DNA of 64,000 nt, from NCBI RefSeq assembly GCF_016433145.1, contig NC_058131.1, positions 42,434,291-42,498,290 of the forward strand. Reading direction: 5' to 3'. Shown here piece after piece: positions 5,919-64,000 of the stretch (position 1 is its first letter; each line of letters starts with the position of its first letter). The position numbers and the translations under genes were made by a program. Source of the stretch: Gracilinanus agilis. Taxonomy: Eukaryota. The notes beneath the pieces were generated by a model. It had not been told where the DNA came from, made no database searches, and saw only the letters and a program-made list of their open reading frames with translations.

Positions 5919-25974
<20,056 letters not shown>

Positions 25975-26949
25975 CGTACGTGTGGTAGGCTGGCTGGCAC
26001 CCGGCTGGGCAGAGCAGGGCAGAGAGACTGACTGGGACGCTGAGCTCCCTCCGTCTCTGCTCTCCCAGGGCACGTTCCCAAGCACTGATGTCTATTCAAA
26101 ACTTTAGACTGTCTGGGCTGGGCAGGGAGAGACAAAGGGGAGAGAGACTGTTGAGTAATGGCTCTGTCCAAACAGTGGTTGGCTTCCTGAAAGGAGAGAA
26201 AGGCGAAATGGAGAGCCTGCAGAATCCCCTCTGTCCTCCCTGCTTGTCCCCGAAGCCCAGTGTGCACTGACCCGGCCCCTGCTAATCATTGGAGCGTTAT
26301 TAGAATGCTGGGGAGCCCCAGAGGCCCCTGCTGATTGGCTAGAAGACATTCCAAGACGGTGGATTAATGAATTGATGGTGGGCCCAGGGGGTGCTCGCTA
26401 TGGCATCTGAGCCTATTCTCCACCCCCTGAACTCTCCCCCCTCGCACTCCAAGAGAAGAATATTGGGCATGGGGGAGAGGGCAGTTATGGTGGGAGATGG
26501 AAGGGTCACACAGGACCCCAGGGGAGTTCTTCTCTTTCCCAGGAAGCTCGCCTCCACCTTGCCATGAATTAAACATGGGCAGAAGGTAACAGCACACCGT
26601 GTGCCACCTGAGAGGGGCGGGCAGCTCCCCTGCCAAGGCTGGAAGGCCCCAGGTCCTGGGAGGGCTGGGAAGGGAACGTCGGGGCCGGGAGGTAACAACA
26701 AGGGGAGAAGGAGGCAGAGGGGAGCCGGGTCAGGATTGCACCGCTGCCAAAGGGCATCGGAGGCGGGAGCAGAGAATCTAGTTTGAATCTAGGCTGTCTA
26801 GAAAGGAAGGGAGCTGGATCCCAGGCAAGTCTCTGGTGCCCTGAGAGGGAGCAAGAGAGACGACTTAGTTAAGGGGAACAGGAGGCAGAGACCCAGCTGG
26901 CCGAGGCAGACAGAGCCCCGCTGGGTGGCTTCTAGGGTCTGGGGACAGA

Positions 26950-27850
26950 GGACTGGAGGACGTTGGGAGGCTGTAGGGCTAAGGGCAGGAGAGGGGTGGA
27001 AGGGACCCTTGGGCTCTACGGGCCGGCCGAGGGCCACGAATCTCCTCTGGGCGGGTCCAACCCCTGGGAATTGCTCTCCAATGAGATAATTGTTTAAAGG
27101 GCTCAACGCCATCCCCGGCCCATGGAAGGGGCTTACTAAATGCTCGTTCCCTTCACTCCTTCCCCTTCCTGGGACCCCAAATGTCCGTGTGGGACCGCTC
27201 CGAGCCGCGGGAGACGAGCTCTCCTCTGCAGTCATTTTCCTTATGGGACCGCAGGCGCGGCGCTCGGTGCTCTGCCGCGGGGTGAGGAGGGGAGAGCGAG
27301 AAGACGGAGACGAGGGTCTGTGGGTCTGTCTGCGCGTGTCCAAGAACAGACAAGCGTCGTGACGCACCGGGCGGGCCCTGGACACTCAGCAAGAGCCAAG
27401 GCCCTTCCTTCGCGCTAGCTTTAGCTCTCCGTCTTCAGATTTCACCCCTCTTTGCCCCCCGCCAAGAATTCTTTTCTATTATTCCCCCAAACTACTTGGA
27501 AAAGGTCTTTGGAGATCTCGCGGCTGCTCTGACGTTTTCTGAGCGAAATCTACAGTCACGGCGTCATTTCTAAAAGGACATTTTATTGGCGTTTCCGCAT
27601 CCCCGGCTTCCGCTCCCCGGAGCCGAGGAGGGGCCGTCCAGCTCTCAGTCGCCGCGGGCGAATCGCCCGCCTCCCCGGGCTTCCGTGTGTTTGTCAGGAA
27701 GGATGGCGCTGGGCCACCTGCCCGCCAGGGTCCCTTCTGACCCCGTGGCCCAGAGCTGGGGAGGACGCGGGCCCGGGGGATGCCGCCCACTCCTGGCTCT
27801 CACCAGCAGAGAGCACCGTTCCCTGTGGGATCCAGGAGCGGGCACTGCCA
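26950..27850. promoter_or_regulatory. CpG island between the divergent CLEC18A and fibulin-7-like start codons; candidate bidirectional promoter
   Basis: Local CpG enrichment, GC box (gggcggg ~27370), CRE/ATF-like half sites and a reverse CCAAT (attgg ~27585). Both ATG-bearing exons are preceded by splice acceptors, implying upstream non-coding exons. Confidence 0.65.
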
Positions 27851-28246
27851 GCCATTCCCCACTGGGTGTGAATGAGGGATTCTTTCCCTTTGAATGGACA
27901 CAGTGTGTGGGGCTGGGCCGACTTGGCAGAGGCTCCAGCCTCCAGCCTCTCGCTCGTTCCCTTGCCAACTCCTCTCCCTCCCAGGCTGAAGGTCTGAGTG
28001 TTGTTTCCACCAGGGGCCCCAGATGCTAAGGACTCTTCCTGGGGCAACTTTCCTCCCCAGCAGGGCTCTTGGGAACAAGAGGAAGGTTCAAGGATCACTG
28101 AATCCTGAAGTCTCCAGTGAGAAGAGACCTCAACAGCCGGCTTGCTCCACCCCATTGCTCGAGCTAACTGCATGCCGGACACCGGGCTAAGCACTGAGAA
28201 TACCAAGAAAAAAATAGTCCCTGACCTCAAGGCGTTTACAGTCTAA

Positions 28247-30131: not shown

Positions 30132-30197
30132 ATGATTTTTGGGTTGCTGTTCCTCATGGCCCTGAGCCTTCTACAGGTCCCTCTCAGTGATGGACAG
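30132..30197 (+). CDS. Fibulin-7-like exon 1 (signal peptide [22 protein letters not shown])
   Basis: ATG in good context (gggcaccATG); hydrophobic stretch; donor CAG|GTAATT; 66 nt. Confidence 0.85.
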
Positions 30198-33100
30198 GTA
30201 ATTCATTTTGCCCCAAGATTTCTCCTCCTCCCTCCTCCCTCTGGGAGCAGGCAATATCATTTAGGCAGATCCCACCACAGGATACACATCTTGGACTGGA
30301 AGATGAGCATACCCATTGCCCAAATGGAGAAATCAAGGCATAGAGAAGTTAATGTGACTTAGTATCCAGCCTTCTTGAATTTGATCAGGCTCTTTTCCAC
30401 TTGACTTATATACTTTTTGTCCTGAAAGGCTCAAGTAGATATTCGTGTGTTTACCCCCCCCCCTTTGGCAATAATGATTAATTATTACATAATTATAATA
30501 ATTATTAATATTGACATAATAGCCAGCTCTCAGATAGCACTTCACATTATTTCATTTGATCCTTACAATGTCTCTATGAGGAAGGTGCTATGATTATTCC
30601 CATTTTACAGTTGAGGAAAATAAAAATAGGAGAATTTAATGACTTGCCCAGGGCCACACAGCTAGGGGGAGGGTCTGGGGCAGGATTCAAACTCAGGGCT
30701 TCCAGACTCTAGGTCCACTGCTCTGTGCACTGTGGCACTCCCTAGCTACTTCTCCATTTTGGGCAATTTATTTCAACTCTGGGCCTCAGTTTCCTCATTT
30801 GTAACATGAGGTGACTTCCAAGGTCCCTTTCTGTTCTAAATCTATGATCCTCTGAATTGGATGTGTTGAGATTGGAGAAGACTCAGGGTTGATGTGATAG
30901 CAGTTTTCAAGGTTCTGAAGATGGTTTTCATGGAGAAGAGGATTTATGTAGACTTGTGATGTTTGGCTGCAGAGGGCCTGGGGACTTCTGGGAAGGGATA
31001 GCCTTTTGGAGAAGCAAAGGGGCAGGTTTTGTCCCATATAAGAAACAAGCTCCAGAGCCCTCTGAGCTGTCCAGAAGTGGAAGGCACTGCCTTGGTCCAA
31101 AGGAGTAGGTGGGCTTTCCATAGGTGGAGAACTCAACACAGGGTCCTCTGCAGACCTGCTGGCTTTCACGTGTCTCTCTTCCCATCCTCTGACCTCCAGG
31201 GCTGCTTGAGCAAGCGGTCAGTGCTCGCCACCATCCGCCAGATGCAGAAACTGCTGTCCACCCAGGAAGCTGCCCAACTGCAGGGCCTGCGCAGCCTCAG
31301 GAAGCAGCTGACCATGCTCCAAGGGAATGTCCACAAGCAGGCCACACGGAGGAATGGTAACAATGGAGCCTGGGGAGGTGGCTTGAGAGGGGCCAGACCT
31401 CTCATCCAGAGAGCTGCTGAGGAAGGATAGCCCTCTGGACCATTCCGATCTGCGAGACAGTCTGGTTTCACAGTGAATTGGGAGCCCCTATCAGTGCTGG
31501 AAACAGGGTGGGCCTATCCCAACTACTCATATTTTTGTTGTTCAGTCATTTTTCGTGACCCCATTTGGGGTTTTCTTGGCAAAGATACTAGAGTGGTTTG
31601 CCATTTCCTTTTCCAGCTCATTTTACAAATGGGGAAATAAAGGTAANNNNNNNNNNNNNNNNNNNNNNNNNNNNNNNNNNNNNNNNNNNNNNNNNNNNNN
31701 NNNNNNNNNNNNNNNNNNNNNNNNNNNNNNNNNNNNNNNNNNNNNNNNNNNNNNNNNNNNNNNNNNNNNNNNNNAGTATCTGAGGCCAGATTTGGACTCT
31801 GGAAGATGAATTTTTTTGACTCCAGCCCCAATTCTCCATCCATTGTGCCACCAGCTACTGAGATAGCAGGTCCCCAAATTGGACTTTTTTTGCCAAACTG
31901 TTCACATGGAACTAAGTTTTTCTGTGTAGACCTAGCCTTTGGGCATCAGTGGGCCTGTCTAGGTGCAGAGGCAAGTAAATGAGTGTATAGAGGGCCTGCT
32001 TCCTATTTGGATAAACTGATGCCCAGTGAAGACTGTTGCCACGGTGATGACTTTGTCACTTATAATCTATGTCACTTTGGAGAACTCATTTCTGTCCTTT
32101 GGACCTGTTTCATCATCTGTAGGTTGGGGGTGGGGGTGGGCCTAGATGACCTCTCAGGTCTCTTACAGCTTGGAAATCCCATGATCCTATGAATTGACCA
32201 GACAAGTTTCTATAGACTATCCATTCTTCTACTGTTCTGATTTTCCTCTAACATACAACTTTCCAGATTGAACAAATGAGTACTTCTCCACTCCCTATAT
32301 CTGGCCCTCCCTTAGCCCCCCAACTCCTCCATATCATTTATCAAAGGATTCACAAAATTGCAGCTAAAAGGGTCCCTAGAAATTAATGGGTCTAAGAGCA
32401 GCAAGGAGGCTCAGTGGATGGAGAGTCAGGCCTAGAGAAGGAAGGTCCTGGGTTCAAATCTAACCTCAGACACTTCCTAGATGAGTGATCCTGAGCAAAT
32501 CACTTAACCCCCATTGCCTAGCCTTTACCACTCTTCTGTCTTAGAACCAAAACACAGCATTGATTCCAAAATGGAAGGTAGGGTTTTAAAAAATAAAGTC
32601 AGTGGGTCAGCTCCCACCATTTTGCAGATGATGAACTGAGCCCCCCAAATTATATAACTTGCTTGAGGTCATACAACTAGTAAGTGTTTGAGGGAGACTT
32701 CGAACCCAGGCCCTCCCGACCTTGGCTCTTCAGGTCTGAGCATCCTCTCCTAGGGTAAGGTGGAGCAAAGCTTGAACAAGAAAGATTCTGATAGCCTCCC
32801 CAACCTAGTGGAGTGATTTCTGGACTTTGGGTGGTTCTTCTGGGTTTGAATTCCAGTTTTCAAATATACTAGCTGTGTGATTCTGAGAAAGACATTCATG
32901 CCTCAATTTTGTCACCCATAAAATGGGAATGATATCGATGCAATAGTGTGATTCTTTTTTTTTATTTAACTCTTACCTTCCCTATATTGGTTCCAAGATA
33001 GAAGAGCAGTAAAGGTTAGGCAATGGGGGTGAAGTGACTTGCCCAGGGTCACCTGGCTAGGAAGTGTCTGAGACCAGATCTGAACCAGGTTCTCTTATCC

Positions 33101-36100
33101 ACTGAGCCACTTCGCTGCCCCAATAGCCCGACTCTTTGGGTTTCTGTCAACTATAAAGCACGGCACAAACGTGAATTATTTTTATTTTCCTCCTCATCCT
33201 AGAGACGTGCCCCCATCTGGCGATGCCAGCACACGGCAGGAAGCTAGGCAGGAAAGCGGGCATAGGGCACGAGGTGCATTTCCTGTGTGATGCTGGCTTC
33301 CAGCTGGTGGGCTCCGAGTCTCGGCTGTGCCAAGAGAACCGAACGTGGAGTGGACAGCAGCCCTTTTGCAAGAGTAACGTATCTGTAGCAGCAGGGGATG
33401 GATGGGCAGGTGTGTCGGAGGGCGATGGAGGGGGTTCACAGCAGGGCAAAGGAATCTTGGGGAATGTGGGGGCTCTGGAGGGGCCGGGATCCCAGCCCTA
33501 CCTTCTGGGTCTGGTCCAGGATCTTGGTCCGGCCCCAGGGAAGGGGTTTCAGATGCTCACAGCCCGCCGGACCCCAGGCACCAGGCACAGATCCCCCTCT
33601 TACGGGTCCCCACCACCAGACTATCCCAGAACCGAATCAGACTTCAGGGATGAGTTTTTGGGGTGTCTGCCAACTCTTGCTGGGGCGAAATCTCTCTTGA
33701 ACTGGGCATGGAGTGAAGGACGCCCTCTCCCTCCTGGCCCCCAGGTATCGATGACTGTGCCAGCCATCCCTGCACCAACGGGGGCACCTGTGTGGATGAC
33801 GTACAGCGATACATCTGCCTCTGTCCAAGCGGCTGGATTGGAAGCAACTGCCAGACTCCTGCCACCTCCTGTGAGTGCCGCCCTCTCCTCCGGGCCCCTG
33901 CGGGACCATCTGCAGGGAATCACCCCAATCCCACCCCTCCAAGGGGAGACAGGAAGAAGCTTCCGTCTCCTAGAGACAAAGCTGTTACGGATACCTGGGC
34001 TGGGGCAAGCGACAGATCATGCCTGACAATGGGCCATTGGAGGGGGAGCTGAGAAAGCAGGGGGGATGCAGGCAGAGCCGGGAAGGGATTCTCTTTCATG
34101 AGGGCCTCCTGGGTGCCCAGTCTGGTGCTAAATGCCTCTGGGGATCCCTGGCCAGAAGGAACTGGGGCCATGAGTCCGCGTGGTCAAACGTATCTTTCGT
34201 GGGCACACACACGTCCTTCTGCAGTCCAGCAGCTGTCTAGACTTAGAGCACCCCATATTCCTAGGCTATCCCCCTTCTGAGCTCTCTGACCCTCAGCATC
34301 TTCTTCTTCGACTCTACTACTCTGGGAATTTTGACTAAATTCAGTCCATCCGGCTAAGGAGAGCCAGGAGGCTGGAGGGAGAACTTGCGCCGGGGGCCCT
34401 TCTCCCAAGAGCTTAGGCTGAGACTTAGCCGTACAGACCGGGAGGTCCGTGGGGAGACTGCCCTCTCTGTTTGACTGTGACCTCTTCTGCCTACCCCACC
34501 CCAACTGCCCCCAGACTGGGTGTCTCTGAGCAACTCCTCCTTCAGCCGCCAGCCCCGCTGTGCCGAGAACGGGCAGGGCGCCCGTCAGTGCAGCTGTGAC
34601 ACGGGCTTCCAGATGCGTGCCGGCGGCTTGTGTCAAGGTAAGGGTGGCCGAAGAGATGGCAGGCGCGTCTCCTCCGAGAGAGGAGAGAATCTGAGAGCCG
34701 GAGGGCCCTAGGAAGGACTTTAGGAATCATCTAGTCCGCCACTGTCGTTTCACAAAAGAAAAAAGAGAGCCTCAGAAAGGGGGTGCCCAAGGCTCTGAGC
34801 AAGGGGCTGTAATGGAGACAGTCTTGAATTTGGAGGCAGAGTTCAGGGTTCAAATTCCAGCTTTATTTACTACCCGAGTGGCCTTGAGCAAGTCAACGTC
34901 TCTGGGCTTCGGGTCTTCATTTATGACATGGAAGGGACTAGAGTCCAACCCAGCTCCGTTCCTGCCTCAGCTGTTTCGGGAGTGTTGGGGAGGCAGTGAA
35001 GGCAGGAGGGCTCTCTTGGGTTGTCTCTTCAGCCCACCCTCTGCTCCTCCCTTTCTCAGATGTTGACGAGTGCCAGCTTTTCCAGCTGAACCAACAGAAC
35101 AGAATCTGCGTCCACAGCTGTATCAACCTACCTGGGTCTTACCGCTGTGTCTGCCCCGCGGGCTACCTGCTCAACCCTGACCAAAACACGTGTGAAGGTG
35201 GGCACCAATGTTCCTCCCCAGGGGGTATTAGAGCAGGCTGGGAAGTGGGCTGAGAGCACCCCTGACCCTCCAGCATCTTCTGCGGGGGAGCCTGGCTTCG
35301 TGGAGACTCGGCATCCACTCTCTGCCCTCTGCGCCATCTCCCTCCTGCCCTTCCTCTCACCCTGGATGTCAAACCTGCCCATCACATGGCACACTCTAAC
35401 TCTCCGAAGGGCCCAGAGACAGCCTCTTGTGGGCTCTCCCCATAGCCCAAGGAGTGTGGGAAGGGTTTTGGTGGTCTCTCCCACCTCCCAGGACTTAAGA
35501 GGAAATTGAGGAGGCACCAAAGGGACTCTGGGTGAGAACTCAGGAGTCCTAGCTCCTGCGCTGAGACCTCTCCCCTTATCTCTGTGAATTCCCCTTGGAC
35601 ACAAGGAAAAAGTTCAGACTCCCAGGCCAGCCCTTGCTGGGAAGAATCAGGAGGTCCTGTTTTGAGATACAGCCCAAAGGGTAGGAACATCGGGTGATAG
35701 ATTTGGAACTGGAAGGGACCTTAGGGACCATCATGTCCAACCAACCCTCTCGTGTTACCAATGGGAAAACTGGGGACTAGCAAGTGACTTGTCTAAAGTC
35801 ACACAGTAGTAAGTAGATTCAAACCCAGATCCTTTGATACCAAATCTAGAGCTCTTTCCACTGTATGTTTTCTCTCATCCTCTCTTGCCCTGCCTAATGT
35901 ATGTGCTTTTGTGAGAGACAGGCAGATAGANNNNNNNNNNNNNNNNNNNNNNNNNNNNNNNNNNNNNNNNNNNNNNNNNNNNNNNNNNNNNNNNNNNNNN
36001 NNNNNNNNNNNNNNNNNNNNNNNNNNNNNNNNNNNNNNNNNNNNNNNNNNNNNNNNNNNNNNNNNNNNNNNNNNNNNNNNNNNNNNNNNNNNNNNNNNNN

Positions 36101-38285
36101 NNNNNNNNNNNNNNNNNNNNNNNNNNNNNNNNNNNNNNNNNNNNNNNNNNNNNNNNNNNNNNNNNNNNNNNNNNNNNNNNNNNNNNNNNNNNNNNNNNNN
36201 NNNNNNNNNNNNNNNNNNNNNNNNNNNNNNNNNNNNNNNNNNNNNNNNNNNNNNNNNNNNNNNNNNNNNNNNNNNNNNNNNNNNNNNNNNNNNNNNNNNN
36301 NNNNNNNNNNNNNNNNNNNNNNNNNNNNNNNNNNNNNNNNNNNNNNNNNNNNNNNNNNNNNNNNNNNNNNNNNNNNNNNNNNNNNNNNNNNNNNNNNNNN
36401 NNNNNNNNNNNNNNNNNNNNNNNNNNNNNNNNNNNNNNNNNNNNNNNNNNNNNNNNNNNNNNNNNNNNNNNNNNNNNNNNNNNNNNNNCAGAGAGATAGA
36501 GACACAGAGAGAGAGGCAGACAGACAGACAGACAGAGACAGTGTCTGTGTCTGTGGGGGTGGGCTGGGAGAGACAGAGACCCAGAGAGAGGACAGAAGAG
36601 AACATGTGTGTGCTAAGAGAAATGTCGTGCCTTTGCCAGATGTAGACGAGTGTGCAGATCAACAGCACAATTGCAGCCGAGGCGAGCTGTGCATCAACGT
36701 CTTTGGGGGCTTCCAGTGTGTGCGACCAGAATGTCCTCGGCCCCGCCACAACACCAGTTACGTGAAGACGTCAGCCTTGTGAGTGACTTCTTGGACTTTC
36801 CTGACTTGCCCGCCATTTTCCCGTCTCTCACCTCCAGCCTCCCTGGTCTCAGTCTCTTGGGATGAGCCCATTATTCAGGTCAAGTTAAGAAGCCATTTAT
36901 GAAGTCATACTATGTGCCAGACAGTGTGCCCCCAAGATGCAGACAGTCTAACAGGAGAGACAGCCCCCCGCAAAGCCCCCAACCAGACACTAACAAGATC
37001 AATGCAGGATAAACTGGAGATAATGGGAAAGGGAGAGCTCTGATATTAAAGGGGAAACTGGGAAAGCCTTCTGGCAGAAGGTGGGAAACTTGAAGGAAGT
37101 CAGGAAAAGCAGGAAATGAAGAGGAGAATGCCATCGGAGGTATGTGCGAGCCCTTGTGTGAGGAAAAGAAAAGAGACAAGATCACTATGTGGTGTGGAGG
37201 GAATCGTAAGATGTAAGAGGACCAGAAAAGGAAGAAGGGGCCAGGTTATAAAAGGCTTTAGAAGGGAGAACTAGGTGGCTCAATGGATAGAGAGCCAGGT
37301 TTGAAATCAGGAGGACCTGGATTCAAATCTGGCCTTAGATTCTTCCAAATTTGGTGACCTTGGACAGGTCACTTAACGCCCATTTGCCTAGTCCTTTTTG
37401 TTCTTCTGCCTTGGAACCAATGCACAGCATTGATACTAAGAGGGAAGGTAAAGATTAAAAAAAAAAAAAAAAAAAAAGGACCTATTATTTGCCTGATTCC
37501 CAGCTGCCTAACAAATGAGATATTTGTAAAATATTTAAAACAGTGGCTGGCCCCTAGTAAGTAAGAGCTAAATAAATGGGAAGATCATTCCATGCCTCAG
37601 TTTCCTTGATTGTAAAATGAGTAGAATAATAGCACTTACCTCCCAGGGTTGTTTACATTTATTAGATGTATTAGTTTATGTTTATTATTAATGTTAAACA
37701 TTATTTATTATTATTAATTACCTCGTTTATCAAAATCCTCCAAAGTGCCAGGGCTACAAAGAAAGAGGAAGAGAAAATGAGTTCTCTGCGAACCTTAGAG
37801 GGCTCCGTAGTTACGGTGTCCATTGGAGAGGGGCAGCAGGAGCTCTTTGGGGACCAGACCGTCGGGAAGGAGGGGTTTGGGGGCAGGGTCCTCAGCCTCT
37901 CCTTCTGCCTCCGACTTCCTCCAGCCAGTGTGAGCGGAACCCGTGCCCAGTGGACAGCCAAGCCTGCCGCCAGGCGGCCAACTCCATCTCCTTTCACTAC
38001 CTGCCGCTGCCGTCCAACCGCACGGTGCCCCGCGTCCTCTTCAGGATGTCCACCACGCGCTTCCTCGGAGACAGCCTGCGCTTCGCCATCACGGGTGGCC
38101 GGGGCCTCGGGGCTTTTGCTGTGCAGCGCTCAGACCGGCACACGGGCGAGCTGGTGCTGACCAGCCCGGTGCCTGGCCCCGCCACCTTGGAGGTGCAGCT
38201 GGAGATGAGCGAGCTCTCCAAGAAGGTTCTGCTGGGCAAGCACGTCTTCAGGATCACCGCTTTCATCTCCCCCTATGAGTTCTAG
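30132..38285 (+). CDS. Fibulin-7-like protein (FBLN7 paralogue, possibly the gene called fibulin-8), full gene model: join 30132-30197, 31200-31356, 33203-33373, 33745-33870, 34515-34637, 35060-35197, 36640-36778, 37925-38285 (426 aa)
   Basis: Architecture and exon layout match FBLN7 as I recall it: signal peptide, [12 protein letters not shown] coiled coil, Sushi (4 Cys), EGF, 4-Cys partial EGF, two DVDEC cbEGFs, C-terminal domain ([34 protein letters not shown]). All GT-AG, frame continuous, no stops. Confidence 0.93.
31200..31356 (+). CDS. Fibulin-7-like exon 2 (coiled coil, [19 protein letters not shown]...QATRRN)
   Basis: Acceptor ctccag|, donor ATG|GTAACA, 157 nt; heptad-like L/I/M spacing. 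Confidence 0.9.
32398..33122. mobile_element. Inverted SINE1-type pair (32398-32597 +, 32955-33122 -) with MIR pieces between, in fibulin-7-like intron 2
   Basis: Head, CORE and tail motifs in opposite orientations. Confidence 0.75.
33203..33373 (+). CDS. Fibulin-7-like exon 3 (Sushi/CCP domain, [12 protein letters not shown]...WSGQQPFCK)
   Basis: Acceptor tcctag|, donor AGA|GTAACG, 171 nt; C..HG..V.F.C..GF.LVG....C....WSG..P.C pattern. Confidence 0.93.
33745..33870 (+). CDS. Fibulin-7-like exon 4 ([45 protein letters not shown])
   Basis: Acceptor ccccag|, donor CCT|GTGAGT, 126 nt; six-Cys EGF. Confidence 0.93.
34515..34637 (+). CDS. Fibulin-7-like exon 5 (linker plus 4-Cys partial [19 protein letters not shown]...GGLCQ)
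   Basis: Acceptor ccccag|, donor AAG|GTAAGG, 123 nt; FSRQPRC resembles FBLN7 FSRAPRC. Confidence 0.9.
35060..35197 (+). CDS. Fibulin-7-like exon 6 (calcium-binding [11 protein letters not shown]...DQNTCE)
   Basis: Acceptor ttctcag|, donor AAG|GTGGGC, 138 nt; DVDEC and C.N.PGSY.C.C motifs. Confidence 0.95.
36640..36778 (+). CDS. Fibulin-7-like exon 7 (calcium-binding [12 protein letters not shown]...SYVKTSA)
   Basis: Acceptor tgccag|, donor CTT|GTGAGT, 139 nt. Confidence 0.95.
37262..37478 (+). mobile_element. SINE1_Mdo-like SINE with poly(A) tail
   Basis: ctaggtggctcaatggatagagagccagg head to aaggtaaagattaaaaaaaa. Confidence 0.8.
37925..38285 (+). CDS. Fibulin-7-like exon 8 (fibulin C-terminal domain, FQCERNPCP...ISPYEF*)
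   Basis: Acceptor cctccag|, stop TAG at 38283-38285; overlaps the 111-aa ORF 37950-38285. Confidence 0.95.
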
Positions 38286-38606: not shown

Positions 38607-38612
38607 AATAAA
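38607..38612 (+). terminator. Candidate polyadenylation signal (AATAAA) for the fibulin-7-like gene
   Basis: First AATAAA I found after the stop, ~320 nt downstream. Confidence 0.45.
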
Positions 38613-40585: not shown

Positions 40586-40881
40586 NNNNNNNNNNNNNNN
40601 NNNNNNNNNNNNNNNNNNNNNNNNNNNNNNNNNNNNNNNNNNNNNNNNNNNNNNNNNNNNNNNNNNNNNNNNNNNNNNNNNNNNNNNNNNNNNNNNNNNN
40701 NNNNNNNNNNNNNNNNNNNNNNNNNNNNNNNNNNNNNNNNNNNNNNNNNNNNNNNNNNNNNNNNNNNNNNNNCTATCTCTCTCATTTATTGTTGTCTCTA
40801 TGCAGATGACTCCTTAATCTAAAAAGTCTTAAATCTTAAAAAGTCTGAGTTTTACTCCTGAGCTCTAGTTTCCCATTACCA

Positions 40882-59533: not shown

Positions 59534-59938
59534 TTACTTTCCGTGCACGTCACTCATTTCTATCTCATCCTTTCGTCGTTTGTAAGCGAAAAGGGAGACG
59601 AAGGGGTAAAGTTTAGCCTTGGCCTGGAAGCGATGCCCTGCAATGTCGATCTCATACTCTCCACGGTTAATGAAATCAGTTGTTACCACTAGCTGTTCCC
59701 CGGTCTCCTCATTAAAGTTGTGTACAAAGCCAAGGCAGATGTGACGCTCCAGAGTGTAGCTGTAGGCGCTGCTGGTGGTCATACCGACATACTGCCCATT
59801 CCGATAAATGGGCTCTCCCCACCAGGGCCAGAAGTCCAGGTCTGTGTCGTGGTCTTCAAGGATGAACATCGTGAAGCGTTTATACACTCCATTCTGCTTT
59901 TGCTTTAACAGTGCATCCCGACCAATAAAGTCCATCCC
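59534..59938 (-). CDS. PDPR: PDPR terminal coding exon
   Basis: Acceptor ttccag|GGG ATG, 134 codons plus stop; WPWWGEPIYRNG and EYEIDIAG motifs. Confidence 0.96.
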   Translation of the reverse strand, partial: GMDFIGRDALLKQKQNGVYKRFTMFILEDHDTDLDFWPWWGEPIYRNGQYVGMTTSSAYSYTLERHICLGFVHNFNEETGEQLVVTTDFINRGEYEIDIAGHRFQAKAKLYPFVSLFAYKRRKDEIEMSDVHGK

Positions 59939-62579
59939 CTGGAAAAGAAAAAAAAACACAGACCTTCAGCATGCAGGCCACCATTATTTGATTTTGAGAA
60001 ACAGCACTAAGAATCTTTGATCTCAATACATTACAATGCCACCCTCTAGTCATTTCTGGTGAGGTCTTTATCCTTACACTGGAGGTGGCCTACTTCACAC
60101 CTCTTTAGCAACAGCAGATTAAATACTTGTTAAAAATTTAAATAAGACTTCAGTCATAAGACAAATTAGCATGAATTTTTTTTAAAACTTAGATATTGGT
60201 ATAACAATACAAATCCCATAATTACCAAAGCATTAAAAAAAGTAGTCAATCTAAAGGATTTCACAGCTACAGCATTAGAACAAGAATTTTCTATAGACAC
60301 TTTGTTATTTTCAAGTAATTGAATAAAAGGATATTCTATTCATAATAATCTATTTGCTGTTGCAACTCTGGCATTTCCAAGTGTATTATTCTATGAACAC
60401 TCTTTCCTAATCTGACAAGAGCATCCTCCCATAGAGGATCTGAATCTGGGTGTATGCAGTACCTTATCCAATTTCACTCGAAACTCTCGTCCACACTCCA
60501 TGGGTGTTGTGTAAGCATTCAAATCTTGACCCCAAAAGGCAAAAAAATTCTCAATGCGGAGGCTTCGGAGAGCATAATATCCAGCATTTCGGATTCCATA
60601 TTTCTGTCCAACACTCATGAGCTCATTGTACACATGCAGGGCATACTGTAAGGACAAAGAAATTAAGTTTCCTGATGCATTTTAGGGAATTATGACTGAT
60701 GAGGAAATGAGATCATGCTATATGACTCCCATGTCCTTCTTGCTCAAATGCATAGCTGAGAGTTCCTGAGGCTCCTTCCAGGCCAAGCCAATGTGTAAAG
60801 TTCAACTAGGTAGCATCAGTTAATCTCCTCCTTAAAAACAAATTCAGCAGGATACTCTGTGGTATAGACTACTAGCTCCCCTAAAGAACAAATAACACCT
60901 CATTATCCATGATCTGATATGCTAGAAGGACACAAATAAAATTTTCTGATTTGCATTTGGAAACAGTTAATAGCTGATGTCATTTGGATACTATTGGATA
61001 CTATACTCCCAAACTAGGCAGCAAGATCCTTGAAGGAAGGGACCATTTTTTAAAAAATACTTCTTTGCTCCTCTACAATACCACATAGTGTCATGCAAAG
61101 GTCTTTAATAAATACCTGTTAAACAAATACACTTATAGCTTAAAAGCAGAAATTCTATTACTATTGTAATATGACTATTACAATAGGATCCATTTCTTCT
61201 TTCACACCTTTCATCCCATTGTGGCCTACTATTGCTCTCACCACTTCTCAAGCTACTACTCATTGTTTTTATCTCTTTCCTCACACTTTGCTTCTTTTCA
61301 TAAAATGAATATTGGGTACTGTTCTGACCAACTCTAAGTCTGTGTAATAGTTTCTAATTTCTCAGAGATACCAACAATAATAAACTCTGGAAGCATGGAA
61401 GAACCAAAAGAAAAACCATGAAGTCAATCTCTTCTATTTTCTCTAACCCTAAATCTAAAAAGATTCTTTTGGTGACATCAACACCTTTCTCTTTAAAAGA
61501 TCAAGAAATCATTCGCTTCAGGAAAAGTCCTAGTCATGCTTCAGTTAAGCCCTCCTCTCACACTTCTTCCTCTATGTTACTAGCCACTGTGCCCCTTGAC
61601 AAGGGCTCTTTTCTCACTCCTCTAAATTCTCGAGATCAAATGACTCGGTTACAGGACGAAGTGTATCAATCTACTTACCCAAGGCCCCACTCAAACATCC
61701 CAGTAACTATGTAGGGGCCAAAGACCCCTCAGAGGGTGATCTCAACCATTAGAATTAAAGATCCTTCAGGGCAGGGGTTATTTGTACCTTTTGCATTTGT
61801 ATTCCCAGCACAGTGGTTTCTGGCACAGAATAAATACTTTATAAATGCTTTTTTCATTCATTCATTTAAACGCTGGTTTCAGAAACTTACACAGCAACTA
61901 ATTTAAATGTACATAAGTGTCTCTGAATTAGAAACAAATTTAGGATACTTGATGTCAACTAAGAAAATTAATGACTGCAAGGGGTAGCTAGGTAGAACAG
62001 TGGATATAACACCAGGGCTGGAGTCAGGAGGATCTGGTTTCAAATATGGCCTCAAACACCTCCTAACTGTGTGAACCTGGACAAGTCACTTAACCCCAAT
62101 TACCTCGCCCTTACTGCTCTTCTGCCTTAGAATTAATTCTAAGACAGAAAGTAAGGGTTAAAAAAAAAAAGAAGAAAGAAAGAAAATTAATATGAATGCA
62201 TAAAAGTCACATAGTCTCATTCACAAGACAAACTGAACATCCAAATAGCCTCTCTAACCCTGCCTTGTCTGGTTACTGGCACACACTGCACTCAGCTATA
62301 TCCCTATGTGAAATAATATGTATGGAGAAATGGAATTCAAGTAGAAAACCTCCTTTAAAAAAAACTGTCTTAAATTTTGCTTCCAATAATTAAGAGTCAC
62401 CAGCTATGTGGGTGGCCTGACAGATAGATTTGATCAATCATCAACAACTGAATCTTATCAACACTGAAAAGCTCTTATAACTCTCTTACCTCTATAGGAA
62501 TGTAGAGCATGAATCCAGGCTCTCCCGTGTGAGTCATGCTCATCACTCTGATTCCATTCGCATAACCTACACTCATCTC
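59534..62579 (-). CDS. PDPR: Pyruvate dehydrogenase phosphatase regulatory subunit, last three coding exons (62490-62579, 60463-60645, 59534-59938); 5' part lies beyond the window
   Basis: Translation EMSVGYANGIRVMSMTHTGEPGFMLYIPIE|YALHVYNELM...RVKLDK|GMDFIGRDAL...SDVHGK* matches the PDPR GCV-T-like C-terminus; phase-0 GT-AG junctions. Confidence 0.96.
60463..60645 (-). CDS. PDPR: PDPR penultimate coding exon
   Basis: Acceptor ttacag|, donor AAG|GTACTG, 183 nt. Confidence 0.95.
61981..62170 (+). mobile_element. SINE in a PDPR intron (antisense to PDPR)
   Basis: ggggtagctaggtagaacagtgg head, CORE, tail and A-run. Confidence 0.8.
62490..62579 (-). CDS. PDPR: PDPR antepenultimate coding exon
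   Basis: Acceptor ctacag|, donor GAG|GTAAGA, 90 nt. Confidence 0.95.
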
Positions 62580-62922
62580 CTGTAGAAACAAAGCAGAAGA
62601 GAAATTTAGAAAGAGAGGATGGTAATCATTTAAGACCTCTACTAGGCAAAGGCCATTCATTAACTCTGAACTCTGGTCTAAACCTGAGAAATATACACTT
62701 CAATGAAAAGGAGAATACCATTCTTGGGACTCCCCCTTTCTAGTCTGCTGGAATTTAATTCAACAAATATTTATTAAGTGCCTACTTACTATTACACTCT
62801 CCTGTGAATCTCAGGTCCTTGAAGTACTAAAATCATTCCTCTATGCTCTGTCTTTGATTTATAGACAGAAATTACAATCTTTGCCCTCAATTCTATTGAA
62901 TGGGAAGGGGTGGGGAGAGTTA

Positions 62923-62972
<50 letters not shown>

Positions 62973-62974
<2 letters not shown>

Positions 62975-63160
62975 TTTTTTTTTTAAACTCTTAACTTCTG
63001 TCTTAGTAGCAATTCTAAGACAGAGTGGCAAAGGCTGGGCAACTGGTATTAAGTGATTTGTCCAGGGTCATACAGCTAGGAAGTGCCTAAGGTCAGATTT
63101 GAACCCAAGTCCTCCTAACTCCAAATGTGATACTCAATCCACTGTGCTACCTAGCTGCCC
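62973..63160 (-). mobile_element. SINE in a PDPR intron (sense to PDPR)
   Basis: Reverse-complement copy ending atccactgtgctacctagctgccc. Confidence 0.8.
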
Positions 63161-63199
63161 TACAATCAAATTTCAAAAGGGAAAAAAAAACACTCTACC

Positions 63200-63830
63200 T
63201 GGGAAGTTCAAGGAAGGTTTCAAGCAGAAAGAGCACCTGCACTGTCTCAAAAGGATCTATGGATTCTAAAGGGCAGAGGTGAGAAGAAATGTATTCCAGG
63301 AATGGGGGCATTCTGAGGACAGGCAAAAACAAGCAGACCAGTCTGTCTATAAGAGAGTGCCTGAAGGGACAGATTTACAAAGTGAGTCTCCAGAGTGAGG
63401 GAGGACATAGATGATGACTGGATAAAGAGTGTTATTTTATCCTCAGACCACATAGAGCTACTGAAGCTTTTTGAACTGAGGAGTAACATGGTTAGACTAA
63501 TGACTGAGGATAAGATGGCTTTGGTAGCTTAGTAGAATATAAATTAGAGAGAAGCTGCAAGAAAGGAGTCCCATTAGGCTATTGTATGAAATCAAGTGAA
63601 AGACAAGGTGAAAGCTGTGGGGGTGCAGAAAAAAGGATAGATGTGACATGCTATAAAGAAAGGACTTGGCAAAACACTGGAATGCTGCTAGTGAAAGAAA
63701 GGAAAGATTCTAAGGTGACTCTATGGTTATCCAGGGTACTAAAAGAATGGTGCTGCCCTCAAAAGAAATAAGGATGTTATTAATTGTTAGAGAAGGAATA
63801 GGTTGCTTTGGGAGAAGTATAATGAATCAT
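63200..63830 (-). mobile_element. L2 LINE fragment
   Basis: Purine-rich reverse-complement L2 pattern (gagctactgaagctttttgaactgaggagtaacatgg, aaggtgactct). Confidence 0.6.
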
Positions 63831-64000
63831 TTTGGGACACTAACATGTCTGTTTGCCATGAGTTGCCTTACAATACAGATATAATGGACATAGAATGAGC
63901 CTGTTTGCAGGAAAGAGCCAAACAGAAGCCTGCAGCACTCATTCCCAGATGCCTTCACTGTGTTTGATGGCTGACCTTGCTGAGCTGTCCATCACAAACT

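Follow-up and report, generated by a model that had tools for sequence, protein, structure and literature searches.

Canonical FBLN7 (TM14), the closest described relative of the gene reported here, lies at 2q13 in human. Eight fibulins are recognised in reviews of the family (PMC8147605). FBLN7 has been described as an adhesion protein, located in the pericellular matrix and acting via beta1 integrin and heparan sulfate receptors (PMC8147605), and its N-terminal coiled-coil has been reported as heparin-binding (PMC7238533). We analysed a fibulin gene on the forward strand, at positions 30132-38285, of a 64,000-nucleotide stretch of the genome of the marsupial Gracilinanus agilis (contig NC_058131.1, positions 42,434,291 to 42,498,290; the whole stretch is called the window below). 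We conclude, with a probability of about 0.85, that this locus is the G. agilis orthologue of the gene named "fibulin-7-like" in automatic annotation (here FBLN7L), a second member of the fibulin-7 subfamily that was duplicated before cartilaginous and bony vertebrates separated. For the narrower statement, that the gene is FBLN7L, our confidence is close to complete.

Relation to canonical FBLN7 and age of the duplication

The predicted protein belongs to the fibulin family by its tandem EGF_CA domains (exons 6 and 7) followed by a Fibulin_C domain (exon 8), the match to the latter spanning the full Pfam profile (2-99 of 99, 5e-32). It belongs to the fibulin-7 subfamily by a Sushi domain (exon 3) preceded by a Cys-containing basic segment which aligns to the FBLN7 coiled-coil. 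Searches, family scans and folds were run with single exons, or with the stand-in database proteins P0134 (G. agilis), P0246 (Monodelphis) and P0138 (Macrotis). A HMMER scan with exon 8 and two word-index searches all led to proteins that NCBI calls "fibulin-7-like". Proteins of 12 marsupial and 2 monotreme species have been given this automatic name, as have those of many sauropsids, amphibians and fish, and the orthologue models include XP_056667604.1 (Monodelphis) and XP_028930417.1 (platypus). Altogether, FBLN7L is carried by monotremes, marsupials, birds, crocodilians, turtles, squamates, amphibians, coelacanth, lungfish, and ray-finned and cartilaginous fish.

Amino acid identity between the FBLN7L exons and fibulin-7-like proteins was 97% for Monodelphis, 96% for Macrotis, 82% for platypus, 77-78% for alligator, 68% for birds, 57% for gar and 55% for zebra shark (55-56% for sharks). 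The G. agilis genome also encodes canonical fibulin-7 (P0400, XP_044516708.1), a protein of 439 aa whose gene lies elsewhere on the same 725-Mb record, and identity of the FBLN7L exons to this protein is ~50%. The Sushi exon had been thought clearly diverged from FBLN7; at 52% identity, it has diverged no more than the remainder.

A maximum likelihood tree was computed with IQ-TREE (careful search, LG+G4) on 47 rows, among which two EFEMP2 proteins served as outgroup. Canonical FBLN7 proteins (F7) form one clade, supported at 99/95, and FBLN7-like proteins (L) form another, supported at 93/93, while F7 and L together are separated from EFEMP2 at 100/100. Each clade contains chimaera, sharks, sturgeon, bowfin, gar or bichir, coelacanth, amphibians, sauropsids and mammals, in an order near that of the species tree. 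Within the L clade, G. agilis FBLN7L joins Monodelphis (100/95), inside the marsupials (100/99), with the monotremes adjoining (100/99), and marsupials and monotremes are together sister to sauropsids (100/98). In a tree of 67 rows, obtained with the C20 mixture model and a quick search, the F7 clade received an SH-aLRT support of 100 and left G. agilis FBLN7L outside, and the grouping of FBLN7-type proteins was supported at 95 against EFEMP2 and fibulin-1.

The rows dropped for the 47-row tree were long branches or near-duplicates. They were, for the L proteins, L_Gastrophryne, L_Trichomycterus, L_Pseudorasbora, L_Crotalus, L_Erpetoichthys, L_Dromiciops, L_Macrotis, L_Lepidochelys, L_Pleurodeles and L_Tiliqua; for canonical FBLN7, F7_Corvus, F7_Protopterus, F7_Cavia, F7_Sorex, F7_Lissotriton, F7_Myxocyprinus, F7_Rhincodon and F7_Notechis; and for the outgroup, OUT_FBLN1_Cyprinus and OUT_Naja_P0079.

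Since both genes are present in cartilaginous as well as bony vertebrates, they were duplicated before crown jawed vertebrates arose. The original prediction had taken the gene for an ancient paralogue rather than an FBLN7 orthologue; the canonical gene in the same genome and the split of the tree into two clades bear out the paralogy, and the presence of chondrichthyans and bony vertebrates in both clades bears out the age. Its further suggestion, a role in marsupial-specific biology, is not sustained, as orthologues are found across monotremes, sauropsids, amphibians, fish and sharks.

Domain order and 8-exon layout are the same as in FBLN7, as they might be if the gene were a relocated canonical FBLN7 orthologue, or a recent duplicate specific to marsupials. 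Such an origin is refuted by the separate canonical gene P0400, by the ladder of identities, in which FBLN7L is nearer to shark FBLN7-like (55%) than to the FBLN7 of its own genome (50%), and by the trees, which place it outside the F7 clade. The CLEC18 synteny described below, conserved as far back as gar, also speaks against it, and we give it practically no credit.

In the 67-row tree, the fibulin-7-like proteins of a frog and of teleosts (L_Gastrophryne P0020, L_Trichomycterus P0016 and L_Pseudorasbora P0009) sit on branches of 0.7-1.6 changes per column. FBLN7L may be evolving fast, or decaying, in anurans and teleosts.

Gene structure, the Sushi exon and selection

Joined together, the eight exons of Table 1 give 1281 nt, in which a script check found 426 codons and one stop, at the end. 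The seven introns are all of the GT...AG type, and their acceptors have a pyrimidine-rich tract. The ATG has an A at -3 (Kozak), an in-frame stop being found 17 codons upstream, and the first AATAAA occurs 320 nt past the stop codon. The hydrophobic core of exon 1 has a mean Kyte-Doolittle value of 2.3, and the basic segment of exon 2, whose Cys is conserved, has a net charge of +9. The exons encode 29 Cys, all of which align to Cys in orthologues and in canonical FBLN7, the four of exon 5 being conserved across both paralogue clades. Five N-x-S/T sequons are present. The reading of the locus as a complete 8-exon, 426-aa gene of FBLN7 architecture, with cysteines kept and neither frameshift nor internal stop, thus agrees with the splice and frame check, the Pfam matches and the alignment of the cysteines.

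Table 1. Features of the FBLN7L locus and its neighbours (window positions)
Feature	Position	Strand	Description
Exon 1	30132-30197	+	start codon and signal peptide, 22 codons, ends in phase 0; GT donor; 22/22 residues as in RefSeq model P0134
Exon 2	31200-31356	+	single free Cys, basic helical (coiled-coil-type) segment, 10 K/R vs 1 D/E
Assembly gap	31647-31774		inside intron 2 (31357-33202)
Exon 3	33203-33373	+	Sushi/CCP, 171 nt, phase 1/1; Pfam Sushi 7e-11
Exon 4	33745-33870	+	EGF-like domain 1, 6 conserved Cys; Pfam EGF 7e-11
Exon 5	34515-34637	+	linker, N-glycosylation sequon, 4-Cys truncated EGF-like module; weak EGF-type Pfam matches
Exon 6	35060-35197	+	calcium-binding EGF (DVDEC...N...Y); Pfam EGF_CA 2e-9, cEGF 8e-9
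Assembly gap	35931-36488		inside intron 6 (35198-36639)
Exon 7	36640-36778	+	second calcium-binding EGF, first five Cys; ends in phase 2; Pfam EGF_CA 2e-10
Exon 8	37925-38285	+	final Cys of the calcium-binding EGF, fibulin-type C-terminal module, stop codon; Pfam Fibulin_C 5e-32
First AATAAA 3' of stop	38607-38612	+	candidate polyadenylation signal by sequence, predicted 3' UTR of ~340 nt
CLEC18-like gene	6175-25974	-	CAP + EGF + C-type lectin; Pfam CAP, Lectin_C; 5' end toward the fibulin gene
PDPR-type 3' exons	59537-64000, beyond the window edge	-	Pfam GCV_T_C 6e-14, GCV_T 3e-15; tail to tail with the fibulin gene

On the 426-aa proteins of Macrotis and platypus, the exon peptides align to residues 1-22, 23-74, 76-131, 133-173, 175-214, 216-260, 262-306 and 308-426, with exactly one residue between neighbouring peptides for each split codon. 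Since the peptides tile end to end on the orthologues, neither assembly gap conceals a coding exon, and the uncertainty due to the two gaps is confined to intron lengths. The exons are also co-linear and consecutive, with the same boundaries, in platypus, alligator, sparrow and gar DNA. The intron 6 gap (558 nt) is bordered on either side by an AGAC/AGAG simple repeat (region 35880-36560), and is therefore probably an unresolved microsatellite.

The AlphaFold model of exon 8, built from a 31-row alignment, is a seven-strand beta-sandwich with a pLDDT of 85. A fold search with this model gave cadherin/Ig-like beta-sandwiches, a generic fold, as the nearest solved ones, and a search of solved structures with the exon 8 sequence gave no match. 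For the look-alikes found in the ESM Atlas, taxa are given at the phylum level only.

The gene is already present in RefSeq, as a "fibulin-7-like" protein of 369 aa (XP_044515299.1, P0134). This model is 100% identical to seven of the eight exons (1, 2 and 4-8); exon 3, which encodes the Sushi domain, is exactly missing and exon 2 is joined to exon 4. Either the gap in intron 2 interfered with the automatic model, or the omission reflects a real isoform in which exon 3 is skipped. If the second is true, the main product in G. agilis could be the 369-aa protein, exon 3 being minor or unused. XP_044515299.1 itself splices exon 2 straight to exon 4, skipping an exon of phase 1/1 leaves the frame intact, and annotation lists isoforms without the Sushi domain for canonical FBLN7 in many species, as well as for the FBLN7-like protein of a jay. 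Exon 3, however, is intact, with good splice sites and a peptide identical to that of Monodelphis at 56 of 56 residues. Models of 426 aa from platypus, echidna and eight further marsupial species contain it, and it aligns over its full length in platypus, alligator, sparrow and gar DNA; the assembly gap may also have upset the automatic model. A mainly Sushi-less product is thus improbable in our view. The 426-aa form with its Sushi domain is the predicted main product, beside which a Sushi-less isoform could exist.

Selection was estimated by the Nei-Gojobori method, summed across exon-wise codon alignments. The dN/dS ratio was 0.115 against platypus (dS 0.83), 0.108 against alligator (dS 1.2) and 0.20 against sparrow (dS 0.98), all three dS values being near saturation, and 0.31 against gar, for which dS (0.95) is saturated. 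Among marsupials, 117 to 119 of the 119 residues of exon 8 are identical. American and Australian marsupials separated some 75-80 My ago. On the 47-row tree, the path from opossum to koala has a length of 0.056 for FBLN7-like and 0.050 for canonical FBLN7. FBLN7L is under strong purifying selection, and the constraint is about as strong as that on FBLN7. A ratio near 1, together with a lack of expression, had been named in advance as a result that would speak against the original prediction; the value found against platypus and alligator is ~0.11.

Could the copy nevertheless be silent or decaying in the G. agilis lineage, its frame intact by chance? Its promoter has no CpG island. Against this, 426 codons are free of stops over eight exons with all splice sites intact, dN/dS is ~0.11, protein identity with marsupials of both American and Australian lineages reaches 96-97%, and 29 of 29 Cys are kept. 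With the exon 8 identity within marsupials and path lengths equal to those of canonical FBLN7, a pseudogene is untenable, and a silent copy very unlikely.

Placental mammals and the CLEC18 neighbourhood

With the marsupial protein P0138 (Macrotis) as query, 868 protein matches were obtained, the best 120 all having E <= 4e-154. No eutherian was found among these best 120, which belong to marsupials, monotremes, sauropsids, amphibians, and lobe-finned, ray-finned and cartilaginous fish. Likewise, a turtle fibulin-7-like query gave no eutherian among the matches listed. The same database does contain eutherian canonical FBLN7, recovered with a ray FBLN7 query in clusters of 114, 94, 43 and 34 members, so that eutherian proteomes appear well covered. 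As a eutherian FBLN7L is expected between platypus and birds in score, it should rank near the top of the P0138 list. The eutherian sequences sampled were all canonical FBLN7, and the six that were placed in the trees fall in the F7 clade. There is good evidence, from protein sequence comparisons, that placentals have no intact annotated FBLN7L. The absence from placental mammals put forward in the original prediction thus stands as far as annotated proteins are concerned, none being in the L clade or among those best matches. We infer that eutherians lost the gene on their stem lineage.

This absence could be an artefact of annotation or of word-based searching, if eutherians retained the gene unannotated or under another name: only proteins were searched, the best 120 of 868 matches were listed, and the human PDPR-CLEC18 region is, we presume, rich in segmental duplications, which would hamper annotation. 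An orthologue, however, would be expected at ~70-80% identity (platypus 82%, birds 68%), near the top of the list, and none is there, while the large canonical clusters and the F7 position of the six eutherian proteins also argue against retention. We hold retention to be quite unlikely, and loss from placentals remains the reading we prefer.

The window places FBLN7L between CLEC18- and PDPR-type genes, as first proposed; this position is supported by the Pfam domains on the flanks (CAP and Lectin_C on one side, GCV_T and GCV_T_C on the other). In the CLEC18-like gene, Lectin_C is found on the open reading frame 6175-6423, and CAP-like frames are at 16297-16689 and 24180-24494. Its 5' end, at about 25974, lies 4.2 kb from the fibulin start codon. 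The nearest solved relatives of the PDPR-type exons are dimethylglycine dehydrogenases, and we take this gene to be PDPR from its family and its position.

A CLEC18-type partner of FBLN7L, head to head as in G. agilis, was found in wombat (distance ~4.8 kb), Petaurus (~4.2 kb), platypus (~5 kb), sparrow (1.8 kb) and gar (9.5 kb), so that, on the CLEC18 side, the proposed synteny check turned out positively. Farther out in sparrow are AARS1 and a gene with RNase_PH (EXOSC6-type). No CLEC18-type partner was seen within 10 kb of FBLN7L in alligator or zebra shark. The human order is presumably PDPR-CLEC18C-EXOSC6-AARS1, PDPR and CLEC18C sharing one strand, which would place the missing gene where it had been predicted, between PDPR and CLEC18.

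Canonical FBLN7 has other neighbours. In emu an Ig-fn3 tyrosine kinase of the MERTK type precedes it, and in a porpoise (Neophocaena) model it is fused with TMEM87B. No neighbour of P0400 was found within 10 kb in G. agilis.

Conservation of the head-to-head arrangement raises a more speculative idea, to which we attach a low probability. FBLN7L and CLEC18 may have stayed together as a pair, at a distance of 2-10 kb, from a time before ray-finned fish and tetrapods diverged, either through common regulatory DNA or through joint action in the matrix, a secreted lectin working with a fibulin being one example. In that case the pair would have come apart when FBLN7L was lost on the stem of the eutherians, which would thereby have been deprived of a non-redundant component of the matrix that every other jawed-vertebrate lineage sampled has kept.

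Some results count against the conclusion drawn at the outset, or against parts of it. The RefSeq protein XP_044515299.1 lacks the Sushi exon, and the 426-aa product is deduced from the sequence and from the models of other marsupials. The eutherian absence was read from protein databases alone, which decayed exons or an unannotated gene might have escaped. Monophyly of the L clade, at 93/93, is obtained in the 47-row tree only, the base of L being unresolved (48) in the quick 67-row tree. Lastly, the dS values for platypus and alligator (0.8-1.2) approach saturation.

A few observations were made on the rest of the window. Between the divergent genes, at the 5' end of the CLEC18-like gene, the stretch 26001-28000 is moderately CpG-rich (GC 0.61, observed/expected 0.51), and at the fibulin start the CpG observed/expected ratio is 0.12, without a CpG island. 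Past the 3' end of the CLEC18-like gene, positions 1-2000 are CpG-rich (GC 0.60, observed/expected 0.73); EXOSC6 was considered for this stretch and ruled out by tblastn with the sparrow protein. From the fibulin stop to the last PDPR-type coding exon (38286-59536, ~21 kb), no open frame of at least 90 aa with a recognisable domain was found, and this interval probably consists of a long PDPR 3' UTR and repeats. A gap of 187 nt lies at 40586-40772.

Naming, proposed function and comparison with described fibulins

Although automatically annotated, FBLN7L is, as far as the literature could be searched, undescribed as a member of the family: we found no description there of FBLN7L as a distinct fibulin, nor of its absence from eutherians. 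That it is functionally uncharacterised, as the original prediction held, is in keeping with this, no describing paper having been found in the searchable literature. The tentative identification with "fibulin-8" has to be abandoned, since in the literature that name belongs to hemicentin-2, a ~600-kDa protein with VWA and Ig repeats (PMC8147605, PMC3707829, bioRxiv 10.1101/2025.03.28.645931). In the searchable literature, the name "fibulin-7-like" and its variants turn up in only two papers, one on Atlantic-cod muscle RNA-seq, where the phrase stands once, and one on chick.

A chick clone described as "FBLN7, formerly fibulin 7-like" (PMC5007377) was considered as a possible FBLN7L and rejected. 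Its primers encode MASGL... and ...AYEF-stop; in galliforms, canonical FBLN7 ends in SAYEF vs SQYEF for FBLN7-like, and the clone matches the canonical form. The case illustrates how, in birds, one name has come to stand for the other. Several FBLN7L orthologues are labelled "fibulin-7" or "FBLN7 protein" in databases, and two turtle entries called "Fibulin-7" (M7B2M1 and A0A674JTG6) correspond to fragments of fibulin-7-like models, filled in with intron-derived sequence. Other names mislead further: the protein entered for Platysternon as "voltage-dependent calcium channel gamma-3 subunit" is fibulin-7-like, and the Neophocaena "TMEM87B isoform X5" is the fibulin-7 fusion model. These two entries and the two turtle ones are the database proteins P0130, P0326, P0002 and P0003. 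Because database names mix both paralogues, studies of "FBLN7" in chick, frog, zebrafish or opossum must specify which one is meant.

The known list of fibulins was defined from human and mouse, and the ancestor of jawed vertebrates possessed one more short fibulin, sister to FBLN7. It is missing only from annotated placentals, where nearly all fibulin biology was done. Phenotypes of Fbln7 loss in mouse may therefore not carry over to species with two copies, and FBLN7L offers a clean case for asking how eutherians managed without it. As a kind of protein FBLN7L is not new, and automatic annotation already includes it; its value lies in family bookkeeping and comparative biology, not in mechanism.

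As to function, when the FBLN7 and FBLN7L clades are compared, the same residue is conserved in 101 columns, against only 4 columns in which each clade conserves a different one. By analogy with FBLN7, FBLN7L would be a secreted, N-glycosylated, calcium-stabilised protein of the pericellular matrix. Its basic N-terminal helix would bind heparan sulfate, and the half comprising the calcium-binding EGF domains and the C-terminal module would bind cells or matrix partners. As the unpaired Cys is conserved, disulfide-linked oligomers might possibly form. We consider the chances about even that the mechanism resembles that of FBLN7.

With the "fibulin-8" of the literature, hemicentin-2, FBLN7L has only its membership of the fibulin family in common. 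The resemblance is greater with EFEMP2/fibulin-4, fibulin-5 and fibulin-1, which also have calcium-binding EGF repeats followed by Fibulin_C, and which exon 8 matches at 29-35% identity. These proteins, however, have neither Sushi domain nor N-terminal coiled-coil, and they have more calcium-binding EGF repeats; in the 47-row tree the short fibulins are split from FBLN7 and FBLN7L by a long branch of 1.3 changes per column.

Canonical FBLN7 is by far the nearest, with the same order of parts: signal peptide, Cys and basic coiled-coil, Sushi, EGF, 4-Cys module, two calcium-binding EGF domains and Fibulin_C. The FBLN7L exon pieces align to it in order and over nearly its full length, the 29 Cys being common to both. 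Yet the two proteins are only ~50% identical, and their clades have been separate since before the gnathostome radiation. Their neighbourhoods also differ, FBLN7L standing with CLEC18 and PDPR, whereas canonical FBLN7 stands with the MERTK-type kinase in emu and in the TMEM87B fusion model in porpoise. In G. agilis, FBLN7L occupies 8 kb and canonical FBLN7 80 kb. Conservation over deep time is lower in FBLN7L, with 132 columns conserved at a level of at least 90% versus 206 in canonical FBLN7 and, unlike the latter, FBLN7L has no annotated eutherian member.

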